Below are positions 23,533-31,176 of a stretch of 32,000 bases of DNA, in pieces; position 1 is the first letter of the stretch, and every line of letters begins with the position of its first letter. This DNA comes from Wallemia ichthyophaga EXF-994 (taxonomy: Eukaryota; Fungi; Basidiomycota): contig NW_008806274.1 of the NCBI RefSeq assembly GCF_000400465.1, positions 90,244 to 122,243 of the forward strand, read 5' to 3'. The translations under genes were made by a program, and so were the position numbers. The notes under the pieces were generated by a model, which saw only the letters and a list, made by a program, of their open reading frames with translations, made no database searches and was not told where the DNA came from.

Positions 23533-24147
23533 ATGATTATCAATCCAAGACAGCATCTCCACCTGCATCGCATGGACGAGCAGAATGAGCACTTTGCCGT
23601 CCACACCCACCTCACGACGCTGATGCAGTGCTGGGAATGGCAAGCAGACTCCAAAGTGAAAGAAGAGGTTCAGAACATGAGGCTCAGGTTGGCGATAGTA
23701 AACCATAGGGCACAGCGTCACATTGCGAGCCACTCCTTGTTCTTCTCAAAGTGGAAACGTCTCGGTATTTGCTGCAACCTGCGCAAGAAATTGGTTGAAC
23801 TCTTCCAGATGACTTCGTGGATTAACAGGACGAAATTCGAAAATCTCATCCGTCTCCTCGCTGAACGTCTCGTCACCGATTATTGCAGACGCCATTTTAG
23901 ATATATGCCACACGCTCACCACTGCAATCTTATGCAAAAAGCTACCATGAAATCCCTCCTTCTGCGAGCTAAGCAGATAGCAAAAAGAAAATCGCGCGCT
24001 AGAGACCCGAGGTTGGAACTTAAAAAAGGAACCAAGATCAAGGGCGCTCTGATGAGGTCTATTATGTTTAAAAATGTTCCTCAGTACTTTGCCGCCGTTG
24101 GTAGCGCAGCTCCCATCATCCGCATTACAGGCCAGATCCCTTTTTAG
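23533..24147 (+). CDS. Hypothetical basic protein, 204 aa, no recognisable domain
   Basis: A 615-nt uninterrupted ORF fills the gap between the BRCT gene and the convergent HSP20, and the other frames are broken. No homology recognised. Confidence 0.5.
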   Translation: MIINPRQHLHLHRMDEQNEHFAVHTHLTTLMQCWEWQADSKVKEEVQNMRLRLAIVNHRAQRHIASHSLFFSKWKRLGICCNLRKKLVELFQMTSWINRTKFENLIRLLAERLVTDYCRRHFRYMPHAHHCNLMQKATMKSLLLRAKQIAKRKSRARDPRLELKKGTKIKGALMRSIMFKNVPQYFAAVGSAAPIIRITGQIPF

Positions 24148-24202: not shown

Positions 24203-24693
24203 CTAATGTATTGTTATCCTCTTTGGCTCGGATTCTGGTGGGTGTCTTGAATATCTGAGCGTAAGCAGCCCATTCTCGTACGCAGCGTGGATATTATCTT
24301 CTGTAATGTGCTCGGGTAGCTTCCACGTCCTGCTCAGTGGTGTAGAAGGGCTGCGTTCGTTGATGACGCAATGTGACTTCTCGGACTTGTTTTCCTCGGA
24401 CTTCTGCTCTACTGGTTTGGTAGCTTTTACTGTAATGCCGTGGTCGTGGATCGATATGTCAACCTCCTCCTTCTTGCACCCAGCTAGATCGACTCTCGCT
24501 TCGTATGAGTTGCCGTATTGGATCAAATCGAGTCTTCGTATAGCATGTCAGCAGAGATACAACCCGTACAGACTACCACTTACCTCGCTCTAGATGTAGA
24601 AGGAGTGCTGTTACGCTTCACTGGCGCATTCTCAGTAAAAAAGAAGTCAAGTGGGAAATTGCGTTCGCTTGGTTGATTGTAAAATATGGTCAT
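24203..24693 (-). CDS. Small heat shock protein (HSP20/alpha-crystallin domain), one intron at 24534-24583
   Basis: MTIFYNQPSERNFPLDFFF...R|LDLIQYGNSYEARVDLAGCKKEEVDISI...INERS...LSRTWKLPE...IHAAYENGLLTL...PKRITIH*. Confidence 0.92.
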
Positions 24694-24784: not shown

Positions 24785-25102
24785 GCTTCAGCGAGATAAG
24801 CAGGTGACTAAGCTCTGATGAGTAATTTAAAGCCAGCGTGAGCCATTCAGCAGTATCCTTTCAACTACTCAAACGCATGGCGGTCGTATACGAAGAGAGA
24901 AGTCAGGGATATTTTCACAAACGCATCACAAACGCAAAAGATAGAGAGAGCGATGCAATGTATTTTATAGTGACGTAGTGTCACTTATTGAATGCAGTAG
25001 CGGTATATATTGTAGTTTGATGTATTAGATTGATGTTGATGATGGACGTGTCTTTGCTTTTGCTTGCATCGGATAGCTGTTGGACGGCCCTTGTCTGTTA
25101 TT

Positions 25103-25297
25103 TCATTCTCGATTCCGAGGCGGTTGCGGGTAGCTGCAATACGGGCACTGCTTGAAGAACGTTTCATTCCATTGGAGACAGCCGGTATTGCTGCAGCGCC
25201 ATTGCGAGCAGTTTGAATTCCACTTGCTGATAGGGATAGGCTGGATTGTTAGCTATTGTTCTCTGTAATCGTTGCCAATAACACCCACTTGAGTCAT
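25103..25297 (-). CDS. 48-aa RanBP2-type zinc-finger microprotein (exons 25297-25289 and 25240-25103)
   Basis: A canonical 48-nt intron (gtgggt...gctaacaatccag) joins MTQ to PIPISKWNSNCSQWRCSNTGCLQWNETFFKQCPYCSYPQPPRNRE*, which matches W-x-C-x4-C-x3-N-x6-C-x2-C exactly. A TATAAAA lies upstream at about 25420-25426. Confidence 0.75.
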
Positions 25298-26037
25298 CTT
25301 TTTCAGTTTCACTTGCTCGAGCACTTGTTCGATTTGTTTCTGGTGCGCTTGCGCTTGAAATGTACAAATTGTCTTTATGGTGGTCACGACCAAGAACTAC
25401 CACTCAGTATCGCCCTGATTTTATAACCGCCCTGATTGATATTTTGATGGCCGAAGTACGTCCACGTCACAAAGCGTGACCGGTGTGATTATGTGGGGGT
25501 GTAAGCTGCTGAGCAGTGTTGTGCAGATGTCCTTTTCGAGCAATGTGCAAACTAGCTTTCATGCTTCTCTTGGCGCCTTTCTCTTATCAGATGACTCAAT
25601 GCGATGACACAGGTCGTTGTCAATGCTGTGATTCTGACGCCATCAACTTTACTGAAAGAGCCCTTTTTGATGACTTTTACTCTGTTCCATTGCTTGATTA
25701 CGCTCATCCTCAATTAACTTCAGGCACCCTCCCAAATAATCGGGCGGCATCATCAAAGATGCTCGGAGTTGAACTTGGTATACCGGGACCGAAATTAACT
25801 AAAAAGCTACACTAAATCTATAGCGCACTCCTCAATTTACTCCGGACCGAATCCGCAAACAAAGATGGTGCCATCAGATAGCTGATATCTGATCTTTAAT
25901 AAATTGAAAGTAATTCAGTGACATTGGATGGACTTTGGAGATCAAGGGATCTATGAACTGGTAGAAGACCTTTGATAATGACGATCTTTGCCTCACTAGA
26001 TGTAGCTATTGACTCAACACCCAAGTCTTGCTCACTC

Positions 26038-26444
26038 ATGTGGATTGATGTATTATTTTACTGTTTAGTCTTAATTGCGACTAAAGCGAGTCAATCCTCT
26101 CACCAGAAAGACGCACAAGTCAGCACAAGCGATTAGAGTCAACTTTATATTAACATCTATACAAAGAATGGTATGATACATTCAATTACTCTAAACTCTA
26201 AGCTGTGAAAAAGCAAATAGAGATAAGACAAAGTGTTTTGCCTTGGGTTTTAGCTAATAGAACGGGACTCACAAACGTCGATAATGATGTATTTAATCTT
26301 GGTATTTCCGAGGCTGTTGACAGGGTGGCAAGATTGCCAAACCTTGAAGAGATCTCTCAGTATCAAGAAGTTACTTCCGAAACGCATGCAAGACATGCTC
26401 GAGCTTCTTTGGATATAGTTTTAGATGTTCTCAAGAAAATGTAA
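26038..26444 (+). CDS. Probable small secreted protein (about 102-108 aa) with a 4-nt microexon
   Basis: Exon 1 MWIDVLFYCLVLIATKASQSSHQKDAQ (signal-like), intron 26119-26166, microexon AATG 26167-26170, then an intron to the acceptor at 26202 or 26220. Either acceptor joins in frame to ORF 26205-26444. Confidence 0.5.
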
Positions 26445-26852
26445 AACTCCTAGTGACTTGCTCATTTGATTTTGTAATGCTGCATTTTGGTTTTACGTGT
26501 TTGGTTTTTAATTTTTTGTTAAAGTATATTGAATTGATTTCTGTACATATAGTGAAAAATATTATAATTATACATAACTATACATGGCTATAAATGGCTA
26601 CAAACAGCTATACAAATACCTTTTTATCGATAAGCTTCTGAGAGCGCGTGACGGGATGTCACTTCGGGAATGGTTAGCTTAGGTTAGTCATGCACAATGC
26701 CGCGCATGTGCACTCCCTTTCAATTGGGATGATAGAAGATTCGCTATTTACACCTAATTGGCTTAGCTGCGTTTCATTACTATGTATTTGAAATGACTAT
26801 AATCTTCACTACTACTACATCAAGCGCCTAAAGCAACTAATAACCCTTTTCA

Positions 26853-28363
26853 TTAACGATCAACCTCACCAAAGACTAAATCGCTCGTCCCTATGATCGC
26901 GCTGAAAATTTTCAATAAGCTATATGTGGCTATGGAAGACAGTTACTTACACCATGTCAGGGAGGAAATGGTGGCGCGACATAAAGTCAGCACCAGCCAA
27001 ATGTGCAAAGCCAGGCGCGCGGATCTTGCACTTGTAAGGTCTGTTGGTGCCGTCGCTGATGAGATGCACCGCCATTTCGCCCTTTGGCGCCTCGATAGCA
27101 GAGTAAGTCTCACCCGCAGGCACTGCATAACCCTCCGAGAAAAGCTTGAAGTGGTGTATCAAGCTCTCCATCGACTCCTTCATCGACGCGCGTGGTGGAG
27201 GGACAATCTTGTGGTCGTCGATCTTGTACGGTCCAGGCGGCATCTTGTTGCAACACTGCCCGATGATTCTGATGGCCTCTCTCATCTCCTGGATACGGCA
27301 GATGTAGCGGTCGTAGCAGTCGCCGTTCTCCCCGACCGGTATGTCAAAGTCGACCTCGTCGTACTTCTCGTATGGCTGCGTCTTGCGCAGATCCCATGGG
27401 ATACCGGAGCCACGCAGCATCGGGCCTGAGAAACAGTAGTCGAGGGCCTCGTCCGCTGTCACTCTACCGACACCGATGGTACGCTCTTTCCAGATACGGT
27501 TGCCGGTGACAATCTCTTCAATCTCGTCAATGCGCGAGCTGAACTGGGTCGCCCACTTGTGAATGTCCTCGAGGAGGCCGTGGGGAAGGTCGAACGCTAC
27601 ACCACCCGGGCGGATGTATGCGGCATGGAGACGCGCGCCGGAGACTCTCTCGTAGAACTCCATCAGCTTCTCTCTCTCTTCGAAACCGTAAAGGAAGGGA
27701 GTGAGTGCACCGACATCCATGGCGTGTGAGAGGACAGCCATGATGTGGTTAAGAATGCGGGTGATTTCGGAGAAGAGAGTGCGAATCCACTTTGCGCGCT
27801 CTGGGACATCAATGTTGAGCAGCTTCTCGACGGCTTTGGTGTACGAGAGTTCGTTGGTCATGGCGGAGGAGTAGTCGAGACGGTCCATGTAGGGGAGCGC
27901 CTGGACGTAGTTCTTGTACTCCATCAGCTTCTCAGTACCGCGGTGGAGAAGACCAATGTGTGGATCGGCTCTGAGGATTTCTTCACCGTTAAGCTCGAGG
28001 ATGAGACGGAGGACACCGTGGGCAGCTGGGTGCTGGGGACTGTGTGGTGGATGTGTTAGCGTGTGTGTGTGCGTGTGTGCGTGTGTAGCCACCGCAACTC
28101 CAAACGCACCCAAAGTTAACTGCACAACTAGTGAGCTATTTGAACACAAAATGAACATTATACGCACCCGTAAAATGACGTAAATCTGCGTCTTTTCTGT
28201 CGCCGCTCTCTTTGAGAATATCCTCTGCACTTAAATCGTGCATATCCTCAACAGTGGCAGAGCTCGAGGCTCTGCTCGATGTACTGAATCTACTGAGATT
28301 GCTGGTAGCAGCCACTGGCTTTGGAAATTTCAAGCAATTCCTTATTGAGTTGAAACGAAGCAT
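26853..28363 (-). CDS. NDUFS2: Mitochondrial complex I 49 kDa subunit (NDUFS2/NuoD homologue)
   Basis: [76 protein letters not shown] and terminal DLVFGEVDR* at 26853-26855. Confidence 0.97.
28058..28086. repeat. Imperfect (GT/CA)n microsatellite in an NDUFS2 intron
   Basis: gcgtgtgtgtgtgcgtgtgtgcgtgtgtag. The ORF track translates it spuriously as THAHTHTHT. Confidence 0.85.
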
Positions 28364-28465
28364 TTGGTGGTGTTGACGGTGCACAAGTGTGCTAGCCGCG
28401 GATAGCACAAGATCATAAATTTTTTTGAAATATTAAATACATTTATTACAATAGCTATAATTAAA

Positions 28466-30003
28466 TCAATTGCCTTGCTTAGCTTGACTCAATTGGCTCT
28501 TTTTTTCTGCGAATAACTTCGATTCTGCGACGATGATAGCTGCGAGTGGCGTGTTAGCTGCGAGTATTTCTCTTAAAACATCAATCTCACCCTCTTGCAC
28601 CCAGTCGCGCCTATAAAAATCTGCTCTGCGCATCTCTTCCACCGGCACATTGGCATGCTCTGACCCCAGTATCAAATCGAGATCTCTTGATTGGCTATTG
28701 ATCCAATTCTTGACAAATGCTGCTGAATCGTTACTAAACTCATCCAAAAAGTCCCTCTTAACGATAGCATTCCTCACTGCTATCGCTGTCTGAGAAATCT
28801 CCTCATCCAGCTGTGCAATCCTTTGAGACAAATCGTGGTTTGGCATGTAAGCTGTGATTGTATTTGCCATCTTCTGCTTGATTGCATCTTCAACGTCGAT
28901 ATTGATATCGAATGCATGCTCTGACTGTGTTAGCTCTTTATCCACCCTACCATCGCTGACGTCAGTCAACCCTACCACACAAATAGTCCACTCACATGAC
29001 CGTATACTCCAGTACAACTGGCTCAACTGGAATCAAATACTTTTGTACGACATCAGGCAGTTCATGGTAGTAGATGGAATCAGCATGGAATATCTGCCAC
29101 TGTGTGTCAGCGTTCTTCACTCACATCCACCTCACCCACCTCCTTCAAATTGGAATCGGCTTTGATAACCCTTCTATCCTCTTTATCGAGTAAGTTATTT
29201 TGCTTCACGTATGCCCACATGTGAGTGATAATACCAGCCCTGGAATCCTCTTTGATCCCGAGCAATTGTGAAAGTGGTTCACTTATACCATACTTTTCAG
29301 GCATATGATCGAGGTGGAGGATTATTTTGGCCTTTGTTGCCTGATCGCCCCTCCTTTTGATCTCAAAACCATCCTTGTCACTCTCACCGGGCTGCTTATG
29401 CCATTCAACAATCGATGACTCTGGGTAAATTGAAGAGTCACGATCAAATTCCACAATCATTGATTTCAAGAGGGATGAAAATTTCTTCGGGGCGCCTCTG
29501 TTTGCTTTAGTTGTAGTCCCATCGAGCAATCTTCCCTCAATTTTAAACGTCCAAGCTGGAATACCAGCGCCTGTTTCGAAATTGACCATCTCTCCAAACT
29601 GCTGCTGTTCCCGCTGCTGCCATGGTTGACCGGAGGCTGTATTTGAAAGGAAAACGCGTAGCTGCCTGGTAGTTTTCGCAGGTCTTTGCAGACTATCATG
29701 AATCTGTGCACGCTTATGAGCAGCAATCATATCCAGTCTCTTTTCAAAACGAGTGAGATCGTCGTACATCTTTGATTGCTCTCTGACTGATTCGATGGCT
29801 TGGACGGAAGGAGGAAGTGATCTGTCTGTTGGTTTCTTCTTCTTGTACTGCTTCAGAGCTTCCTCCAAATCTGATTGACGCTTCTTCGATTGGCTGTGAT
29901 TCGTTGGAGTTGTGGTAGCCGTGTACATATTCGCATGTTGCGGCTGTGGCTGTGGCTGCTGCTGGGGCGAGCCAGTAAAAGCCATTTGCTGATAAGGATT
30001 CAT
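28466..30003 (-). CDS. SWI/SNF-RSC SWIB-domain subunit (Swp73/Rsc6/BAF60 family), three introns
   Basis: KKPTDRSLP, FEKRLDMIAAHKR, LRVFLSNTA, WTFKIEGRLLD, DGFEIKRRGD, SWIB motif SRAGIITHMWAYVKQNNLLD, RDFLDEFSND...WINSQSRDL. Confidence 0.93.
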
Positions 30004-30088
30004 TTTTGAATTACGTCGATGCGTCGTTGATGGTGGTACAAGTGGAAGCTGCGTTGACCCGAACAGCCAACGCGGTGGAGACAAAGAA

Positions 30089-31176
30089 ATGTCCACATTG
30101 ACGCTCAGTTCAGATTTGATGGTTAGAGCGCCTTTAGTGTACACCAACCACCGACTCACATCCCCCAGAAATCATTCAAGCCTTGCAAGGCTTTCACCGG
30201 GTATTGCCAGGAAGACAAGGACATTACTGCTCTGTCTTTCGATGACACTGGCAGCACCTGCGTTACGGCTTCCTCAGACGATACCATACATCTCTTTGAC
30301 ACAAAGCTGGGAAAACACCAGAAGTACTTCAGAAGCGGTAAATATGGCGTGGATTTGCCTTGCTTCACCCATTCAAGCTCAACGATTATATATGCATCCA
30401 CCAAGCAAGACAACTCTATAAAATACCACAGCTTGCATGATAATAGCTACCTACAATACTACAGAGGCCACCAAGGTAAAGTTAACTCCCTCGAAATGAG
30501 TCCGACAGACGATATGTTCTTATCGGCATCGAGTGATGATACTGTGAGGCTTTGGGACTTACGCACCCCTCAATGTCAAGGGTTGCTTCACATTAAGGGC
30601 AACTCTATAGCCGCGTGGGATCCTAGTGGTCTTTGTTTTGCTGTCTCCCTTTACTCAGAATCCATGATCCTCCTCTACGATAAGGGTAGGTATGACCAGG
30701 CTCCTTTCGCCACTTTTGCTCTCAGGGACAGAGACCACAGAGGCAGGGATATCCGTCCTCACCCTACTTGCATCAAATTTTCATCAAACGGCAATTACAT
30801 CCTCGTCGGTACAAACTCCCCCTATCATTACATTTTGGATTCTTTTTCTGGCCAGATTTATTACAGACTAACCGGACACGAAACCTTTACGAGCGTAAAT
30901 ATCCAGCGAGACATGCTGAGTTGGTCGCCTGATGGAAAATTCGTCGTCGGCGGTTCTAAAAATGGTAAGATTCACGTTTGGGAGGTACCACCGACTGAAC
31001 CGAGAGATGCTGCCATCAAGACACTCTCCCCAATACACACCACTGATAATCATAAAAACACTCCAAGTAAAATTGTCGCTTTCAATCCTCGCGTTGTTAT
31101 GCTCGCGACTGCTGCTTCATCTGAGTTAGCCTTTTGGCTGCCAATGCAGGACAGTCGCCGTAGCAGCCATAATTAG
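30089..31176 (+). CDS. SWD2: WD40 protein Swd2/WDR82 (COMPASS and CPF subunit), one intron near the 5' end
   Basis: LSFDDTG, SGKYGVDLPCFTH, YHSLHDNSYLQYYRGH, SASSDDTVRLWDLR, IKFSSNGNYILVGT, SPDGKFVVGGS, VAFNPR. Confidence 0.93.

Follow-up and report, generated by a model that had tools for sequence, protein, structure and literature searches.

The RanBP2/NZF fingers (PF00641, PS01358), such as those of FUS (6g99), ZRANB2, Npl4, and TAB2, are Cys4 modules of approximately 30 residues that are almost always embedded in larger proteins. Fingers of this family are recognized by a structural Trp and a structural Asn, and those of the ubiquitin-binding NZF subgroup by a Thr-Phe/Tyr (TF) motif after Cys2 that is accompanied by a hydrophobic position within the second CxxC (PMC11372445), while the ZRANB2/FUS/EWS/RBM-type fingers contact GGU ssRNA by means of D4, N14, an aromatic residue at position 17, R19/R20, and N24 (PMC6384913). 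Zinc finger micro-proteins that consist of one domain are known from haloarchaea, namely the C(P)XCG proteins of Haloferax volcanii (PMC6562870, PMC11241148), for which stress phenotypes have been reported (PMC6562870), and Brz of Halobacterium, which is encoded directly upstream of bop in the same orientation and regulates bop (PMC2253796). Herein we describe a locus that shares features with both groups. It lies on the minus strand of the window, by which we mean the entire 32,000-nt stretch of Wallemia ichthyophaga EXF-994 DNA that was analyzed, and it was compared across three species of one genus, W. ichthyophaga, W. mellicola, and W. hederae. We propose that it is probably an independent two-exon Wallemia gene that has been missed by genome annotations, and that it encodes a free Cys4-finger microprotein that may act as a binding module in a stress context. 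Its products would form a new family of small proteins, although free Cys4 fingers as such are a kind already known.

In our gene model (all coordinates are those of the window), the coding part of exon 1 (25289-25297, minus strand; ATGACTCAA) comprises the three codons ATG ACT CAA (Met-Thr-Gln), with an A at –3 and the start codon in the context AAGATGA. This is followed by a spliceosomal intron of 48 nt in phase 0 (25241-25288, minus strand; GTGGGTGTTATTGGCAACGATTACAGAGAACAATAGCTAACAATCCAG) of the form GTGGGT...GCTAAC...CAG, in which a CTAAC branch point-like box is situated 8 nt ahead of the 3' CAG, and by exon 2 (25103-25240, minus strand), which carries codons 4-48 and the TGA stop (25105-25103). 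The introns of W. ichthyophaga average 61 bp (PMC3849046). Splicing would join Met-Thr-Gln to the 45-codon exon (predicted mRNA junction ACTCAA/CCTATC) and yield a CDS of 147 nt with the 48-residue product MTQPIPISKWNSNCSQWRCSNTGCLQWNETFFKQCPYCSYPQPPRNRE followed by the stop; were the intron retained, translation would end after 14 codons and only the truncated peptide MTQVGVIGNDYREQ would be made. The first-pass annotation of the window had put forward precisely such a two-exon product, absent from the list of open reading frames, and both its gene model and its translation were reproduced exactly. The microprotein is missing from that mechanically made list because exon 2 contains no in-frame ATG, GTG, or TTG, and ORF finders miss the gene because its ATG exon has only three codons. 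Two further statements of the same annotation also held, that the frame is closed upstream by a TAG with no other ATG and that a TATAAAA is located about 125 nt upstream. The TAG was found 37 codons 5' of the ATG with no further ATG between them, and the TATAAAA is at 25419-25425 (minus strand), 128 nt 5' of the ATG, where it may serve as a core promoter. The 48-residue peptide has neither a signal peptide nor a CAAX box and is predicted to be cytosolic, and its predicted tryptic peptides include WNSNCSQWR, CSNTGCLQWNETFFK, and QCPYCSYPQPPR. The window is nuclear DNA of this halophilic basidiomycete, and an ORF of 231 codons at 601-1296 has an identical counterpart on scaffold KE007224.1 of GCA_000400465.1, the assembly of the type strain EXF-994 (Zajc et al., 2013), as well as on two further assemblies. 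Judging from collinearity, the gene would be located at approximately 115.3 kb on KE007224.1.

The two sister species carry orthologues that were detected by tblastn, at L007:5382-5513 in W. mellicola and at L006:5469-5609 in W. hederae, and it is their structure that supports the splicing proposed for W. ichthyophaga. The W. mellicola gene has its ATG at position 5312 of L007, a first coding exon of 21 nt (MSFVPSK), and a product of 50 residues, and its 49-nt intron (GTGAGT...CTAAC...TAG) is at the same phase 0 site and ends exactly before the Pro-Ile codons. In W. hederae the orthologue is a contiguous intronless ORF for 46 residues in which ATG ACA AAG (Met-Thr-Lys) is joined in frame to CCA ATT, such that its MTK/PIGIPRW is equivalent to the predicted W. 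ichthyophaga junction MTQ/PIPISKW. The intron loss in W. hederae is precise and preserves the frame, and it can thus be read as a natural cDNA for the splice predicted in W. ichthyophaga. With the W. hederae gene standing in for a cDNA, the in silico support for the 48-residue product is unusually strong. The intron at 25241-25288 claimed by the first-pass annotation is in agreement with both the W. mellicola intron and the W. hederae fusion.

The same comparison shows that the conservation is that of a coding sequence. By blastn the intervals of 1.7-2.3 kb in which the orthologues reside cannot be aligned, and the sole match with E<0.1 is a stretch of 20 nt within the microprotein ORF. In tblastx searches significance is reached by this ORF and by no other segment of the intervals in each of the three species pairs (E 2e-15, 2e-15, and 6e-18), and the next matches are other frames of the same DNA (E>=1e-4). 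The three-species alignment is gapless over 41 codons with 19 residues invariant, and the positions of exon 2 that are the same in the three species are P4, I5, I7, W10, S12, W17, R18, C19, N21, C24, L25, W27, F32, C35, P36, C38, S39, Y40, P41, and P43. Synonymous differences within the ORF are saturated (pS 0.85-0.95) while non-synonymous differences are restrained (pN 0.33-0.38; Fisher p 1e-5 to 2e-7), and the four Cys (TGC/TGT) and three Trp are retained where Cys, Ile, Leu, Pro, and Ser codons vary without a change of residue. With the adjoining HSP20 alpha-crystallin region as the yardstick (pS 0.67-0.86, pN 0.17-0.18), the microprotein appears clearly constrained, although less so than HSP20. 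Hence, the orthologues under purifying selection that the first-pass annotation had suggested looking for by tBLASTn do exist, in two sister species and with pN well below a saturated pS. Among the three W. ichthyophaga strains there are no variants in 25080-25333, compared to six in the 403-nt downstream spacer; as support for coding this is only suggestive, since, according to the reference rate used, no variants would be seen with a probability of between 0.05 and 0.26.

Two other explanations of this open frame bear directly on these data. One is that it arose by chance or represents an untranslated conserved element, such as an enhancer of HSP20 or a structured RNA, as the lack of an annotated gene at the locus in any of the assemblies might suggest. 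Such an element is hard to reconcile with conservation that is specific to one frame, with synonymous change at saturation and non-synonymous change held back, with Cys and Trp residues that persist through codon changes, and with an intron position that is conserved and has been lost once, precisely and in frame; in addition, scanning the window detected no Rfam family and no tRNA. We consider it highly improbable. The other is that the finger exon forms the 3' end of a gene for a larger protein, the upstream exons of which have gone unrecognized. The coding part of exon 1 has only 9 nt, and in W. ichthyophaga the frame is open for 37 codons 5' of the ATG, both of which are in accord with that proposal. 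However, the 1.7-2.3 kb intervals contain no second conserved coding segment in any frame, each of the three species has an in-frame stop 5' of the ATG (only 14 codons away in the intronless W. hederae ORF), the upstream genes differ among the species (NDUFS2 or another HSP20), and the peptide occurs in none of 5.8 billion protein clusters. A larger protein is very unlikely because the microprotein is the sole conserved segment, stops lie in frame upstream of it, and the upstream neighbor in W. hederae is a different one. The locus fits the generic comparative criteria used for protein-coding genes, with frame-specific conservation, pN below pS, an alignment free of indels, and a conserved splice structure, and a real and independent protein-coding gene is strongly supported in silico. 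As the first-pass annotation proposed, the gene is hidden, spliced, and stand-alone: the orthologues confirm the splice and the frame, and there is no conserved upstream coding exon in the interval.

The locus is not called as a gene in the annotations of two W. ichthyophaga assemblies or in those of W. mellicola and W. hederae, and when the 5.8 billion protein clusters were searched by word index, neither the peptide nor the alignment of the three species retrieved anything that shares even three 5-mers. In the metagenome scan one locus (L013) proved to be a bacterial contig with a chance occurrence of the word CSNTGCLQW and without the second Cys pair, and it was rejected. A previous study of W. 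ichthyophaga reported approximately 200 "novel transcripts" per condition, and its supplements give no coordinates for them (Zajc et al., 2013). The case is one of a conserved microprotein gene in a eukaryote that neither ORF finders nor three independent annotations have picked up. W. ichthyophaga is known for its low number of predicted genes, just 4,884, a count that is affected by small spliced genes that are overlooked.

What kind of finger does the gene encode? The core, from W17 to C38 (25136-25201, minus strand), has the spacing C-x4-C-x10-C-x2-C, which is invariant in the three species, and the four invariant Cys, C19 (25195-25193), C24 (25180-25178), C35 (25147-25145), and C38 (25138-25136), are putative zinc ligands. 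The first-pass annotation described the peptide as a perfect match to W-x-C-x4-C-x3-N-x6-C-x2-C, and the W. ichthyophaga sequence indeed fits exactly, with residues 17-38 (WRCSNTGCLQWNETFFKQCPYC) matched by the expression W.C.{2,4}C.{3}N.{6}C.{2}C. A six-frame translation of the window contains this strict pattern a single time, compared to an analytic expectation of 8.6e-5 occurrences and none in 300 shuffles. It was on this basis that the product had been labeled a RanBP2-type finger, from which it would follow that it binds GGU ssRNA, ubiquitin, or Ran, and acts as a competitive microProtein against larger proteins with RanBP2 fingers. There is more to favor such an assignment. All three orthologues have four Cys that conform to the family spacing C-x(2,4)-C-x(10)-C-x(2)-C (as x4/x10/x2, the spacing of the FUS/ZRANB2-F1-type fingers) and an invariant structural Trp (W17) two residues before Cys1, and the first knuckle is of the C-x-N-x-x-C type seen in FUS, while the Pro-rich tail after Cys4 is like that of RanBP2/NZF fingers in general. 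Moreover, the best PDB match is the RanBP2 finger of FUS (6g99; gapless, E=0.045).

The label nevertheless did not survive comparison with the orthologues. Only W. ichthyophaga has the Asn between Cys2 and Cys3, whose place is taken by Ile in W. hederae and by Val in W. mellicola, which means that these two orthologues do not conform to the PROSITE-type pattern and that the "perfect" match is specific to W. ichthyophaga. A caution that follows is that a perfect match of this type in a single species can be partly accidental. The PF00641 scan that the first-pass annotation had proposed gave no match at E<=10 for the peptide or its orthologues (HMMER filters may hide very weak ones), while the FUS finger used as a positive control scored 43.2 bits (E 2.3e-11) against a gathering threshold of 27 bits, and with the three-species profile the weak FUS match was lost and no RanBP2 finger was retrieved from the PDB. 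The residues that would confer the functions implied by the label are also absent. Instead of the TF motif used by NZF fingers to bind ubiquitin (PMC11372445), the three orthologues have L-Q, L-R, and L-C at the two positions after Cys2, and the positions that contact GGU RNA (PMC6384913), which we mapped by the Cys register, are occupied by Q/N/Q, Q/R/C, E/E/P, F/D/E, F/F/F, and P/P/P, so that the D4, aromatic-17, R19/R20, and N14/N24 contacts are not present. A competitive microProtein is defined in part by a related domain in larger proteins of the same organism; a phmmer search of 1.84 billion representatives gave only 12 weak matches, none of them named or traceable to Wallemia. Two of these matches were discarded as noise, one (P0001) being a wrong-frame repeat and the other (P0003) an N/S/T-rich protein of low complexity. 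We regard a true RanBP2/NZF finger, with the binding or competitive role that it would entail, as rather unlikely.

What is conserved in place of the family residues is PIxIxxW...WRCxNxxCLxW....FxxCPxCSYPxP, of which the invariant W27 and F32 and the flanking PIxIxxW and CSYPxP are found in the Wallemia finger and are not features of the RanBP2/NZF family. The Wallemia finger differs from that family in standing alone rather than within a larger protein, in failing the Pfam model, and in not conserving the structural Asn. Several marginal Pfam matches (RUBY_RBDX, TSGP1, DUF7130, WRC, YdjO, and Neprosin) were rejected, as they were far below threshold, inconsistent among the orthologues, and reflect generic Cys-knuckle similarity only. 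The RanBP2 fold is a zinc ribbon in which two beta-hairpins enclose a single Zn, and a single-sequence AlphaFold2 model of the peptide was too poor for a comparison with it (pLDDT 59.9, pTM 0.27). From its sequence, the product is best described as a genus-restricted microprotein of the Cys4 zinc-ribbon-like type, RanBP2-like but unclassified.

Three other groups of proteins merit comparison. The haloarchaeal micro-proteins are alike in size (<70 residues), in having a single Cys4 finger, and in the CPxC of the second knuckle, and several of them are linked to stress adaptation. They differ in being archaeal, and they have no detectable sequence homology to the Wallemia finger. Furthermore, they are characterized by two C(P)XCG motifs while the Wallemia knuckles are CSNTGC and CPYCS, and the likeness is one of analogy, not homology. 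The second group consists of five repeat proteins (P0002, P0004, P0005, P0007, and P0011), the best matches in the library of 1.84 billion representatives, with E-values of 3e-6 to 6e-4 that owe their significance to summed repeats. They have W-x-C-x-N-x-x-C-[LIV] and C-P-x-C knuckles in common with the Wallemia finger and differ in having 3-9 tandem fingers in 200-500 residues and a Cys2-Cys3 spacer of 13 rather than 10 residues. The repeat in these proteins is GDWxCPNxxCxNHxKxVFAKxxxCPxCG (C-x4-C-x13-C-x2-C). They match no Pfam family above its cut-off, PF00641 included, and may constitute an undescribed subtype of RanBP2-like finger. The third group is that of the rubredoxin-like zinc ribbons, for example the C-terminal domain of rubrerythrin (PF21349), which share the arrangement W-x-C-x-N-x-G...C-P-x-C-x-x-P. 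Their scores are close to that of the FUS match and all are below threshold (PF21349, 16 bits; PDB 9fj2 and 1ryt, E 0.3-0.8), and they differ in having C-x2-C knuckles that are located inside larger bacterial or archaeal enzymes. This similarity is a matter of generic two-knuckle Cys4 character only.

The genomic setting of the finger is a further conserved property. The order on the minus strand of the window is a SWIB-domain gene, NDUFS2 (ending at 26947), 1.65 kb without a called gene, the microprotein, a spacer of 409 nt, and HSP20. The HSP20/alpha-crystallin gene (24203-24693, minus strand; 146 residues; intron 24583-24534) has its own TATA 63 nt 5' of the ATG and is considered here as context only. 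Its product is 99% identical to E3P92_01069, a "hypothetical protein" of W. ichthyophaga, and the unspliced HSP20 ORF has no database record. In all three species the finger is head-to-tail upstream of HSP20 at a distance of about 400-490 nt. The pair is syntenic in W. mellicola and occupies a rearranged locus in W. hederae (L006:3525-6485), where two tandem HSP20 genes have the finger smORF between them, such that its upstream neighbor is a second HSP20 instead of the NDUFS2 found elsewhere, and where the surrounding genes (kinase, Exo_endo_phos, and PX) are unrelated to the NDUFS2...BRCT synteny of the other two species. The finger and HSP20 have moved or been retained as a unit in W. hederae.

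This arrangement brings up the question of whether there is a separate gene at all, as the finger could be a conserved-peptide uORF of HSP20 or could share a bicistronic mRNA with HSP20 as its leading cistron. Messages with several cistrons are on record for other basidiomycetes (PMC4503453), and the finger is on the same strand, 391-487 nt 5' of the HSP20 ATG in the three species, the rearranged locus included. It is the retention of the finger-then-HSP20 order even in W. hederae that makes this explanation harder to dismiss. However, the spacers contain 5-7 non-conserved AUGs with short ORFs that would prevent scanning or reinitiation, a separate TATA box is present 61-106 nt from the ATG of each HSP20, with a GAAnnTTC-type element 5' of HSP20 in two species out of three, and the finger ORF has a TATA-like element of its own and a shared upstream block. 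In addition, the other HSP20 paralogues (L008-L012 and L014) have no such finger ORF upstream, although for most of them there is too little upstream sequence, L008 with 2.1 kb being the exception. The non-conserved AUGs in the spacer, the separate TATA of HSP20, and the TATA-like element and upstream block of the finger argue for two transcription units, and we consider a uORF or a bicistronic message to be unlikely.

The upstream region of the independent gene that we favor contains several short elements that recur in the genus. TATA-like elements are found at comparable positions in W. mellicola and W. hederae. Further upstream is a block (25434-25469, minus strand) in which a CRE-like element, TGACGT / GACGTACTTCGG, is followed by AAATATCAATC; it is partly common to the three species in the same order, and its orthologous counterparts are at approximately 5345-5385 of L006 and 5195-5235 of L007. 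Between the TATA and the ATG, the pentamer TCAAG (25354-25358, minus strand) is present in all three upstream regions and may mark an initiator or transcription start region. The order shared 5' of the finger ORF is thus TGAC(G/T)T-like, AAATC(A/T)ATC, TATA-like, and TCAAG. ATF/CREB-type sites are typical targets of fungal stress-MAPK pathways. The CRE-like block consists of short motifs of low statistical weight and we take it as a lead only.

Sequence variation in this region among the three W. ichthyophaga strains is uneven. The 523 nt directly 5' of the finger promoter (25381-25903) have no variants, and the adjacent AT-rich 947 nt (25904-26850) have 26 (2.7%). Neither segment shows coding conservation between the species.

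Based on these data we put forward a hypothetical scheme for the product. We propose that residues 17-38 fold as one Cys4 zinc-ribbon or zinc-knuckle in which C19, C24, C35, and C38 would surround a single Zn2+. The predicted domain would be packed by the invariant aromatics W10, W17, W27, F32, and Y40 and flanked by PIxIxxW and CSYPxP, and its aromatic-rich surface could form a binding module. We infer both zinc binding and the fold from the sequence. In the context of a stress response, the free finger may then bind a protein or nucleic acid partner as a small module that depends on zinc. A stress context is suggested because the finger is head-to-tail upstream of HSP20 in all three species and a CRE-like TGACGT is located upstream of it. 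A functional tie between the finger and HSP20 is suggested by adjacency, and the CRE-like element by short motifs, and we view both with low confidence; the same is true of a stress-linked role coupled to the adjacent sHSP gene, which is suggested by analogy to Brz and to the stress phenotypes of the Haloferax micro-proteins. In Wallemia the parallel to Brz and bop is one of gene arrangement. One could go further and suppose that the peptide founds a Wallemiomycetes-restricted family of free Cys4 microproteins whose function is tied to the sHSP gene next to it, either as a zinc- or redox-sensitive regulator of its expression, as Brz is for bop, or as a sHSP co-factor, an extension that we view as doubtful. 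If it were true, the family would be a part of the adaptation to stress and low water activity in the most halophilic fungi known, and if the sHSP pairing is functional it would offer a tractable way into the stress regulation of fungi that are extremely xerophilic and halophilic.

Several observations were made on the neighboring genes. Deposited annotations fuse the SWIB-domain gene and NDUFS2 (Complex1_49kDa) into one product of 849-874 residues (L004:1-2840, L005:1-2842, and L007:964-4285). In the window (26947-30159, minus strand) the two are separate ORFs with a stop between them, which indicates that the fusion is probably a pipeline artefact. Just 3' of HSP20 on the plus strand (23533-24147) there is an ORF of 204 codons without a Pfam domain, whose composition looks weakly coding and which is a called gene in the strain annotations (191 and 204 residues). 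Finally, UniRef Q86NK3 (P0014), entered as a "putative small heat shock protein" of Bemisia tabaci, is 70% identical to Wallemia HSP20 over its full length. It is closer to the W. ichthyophaga HSP20 than is the W. mellicola orthologue, and its probable source is a Wallemia-like fungus that contaminated the whitefly cDNA library.
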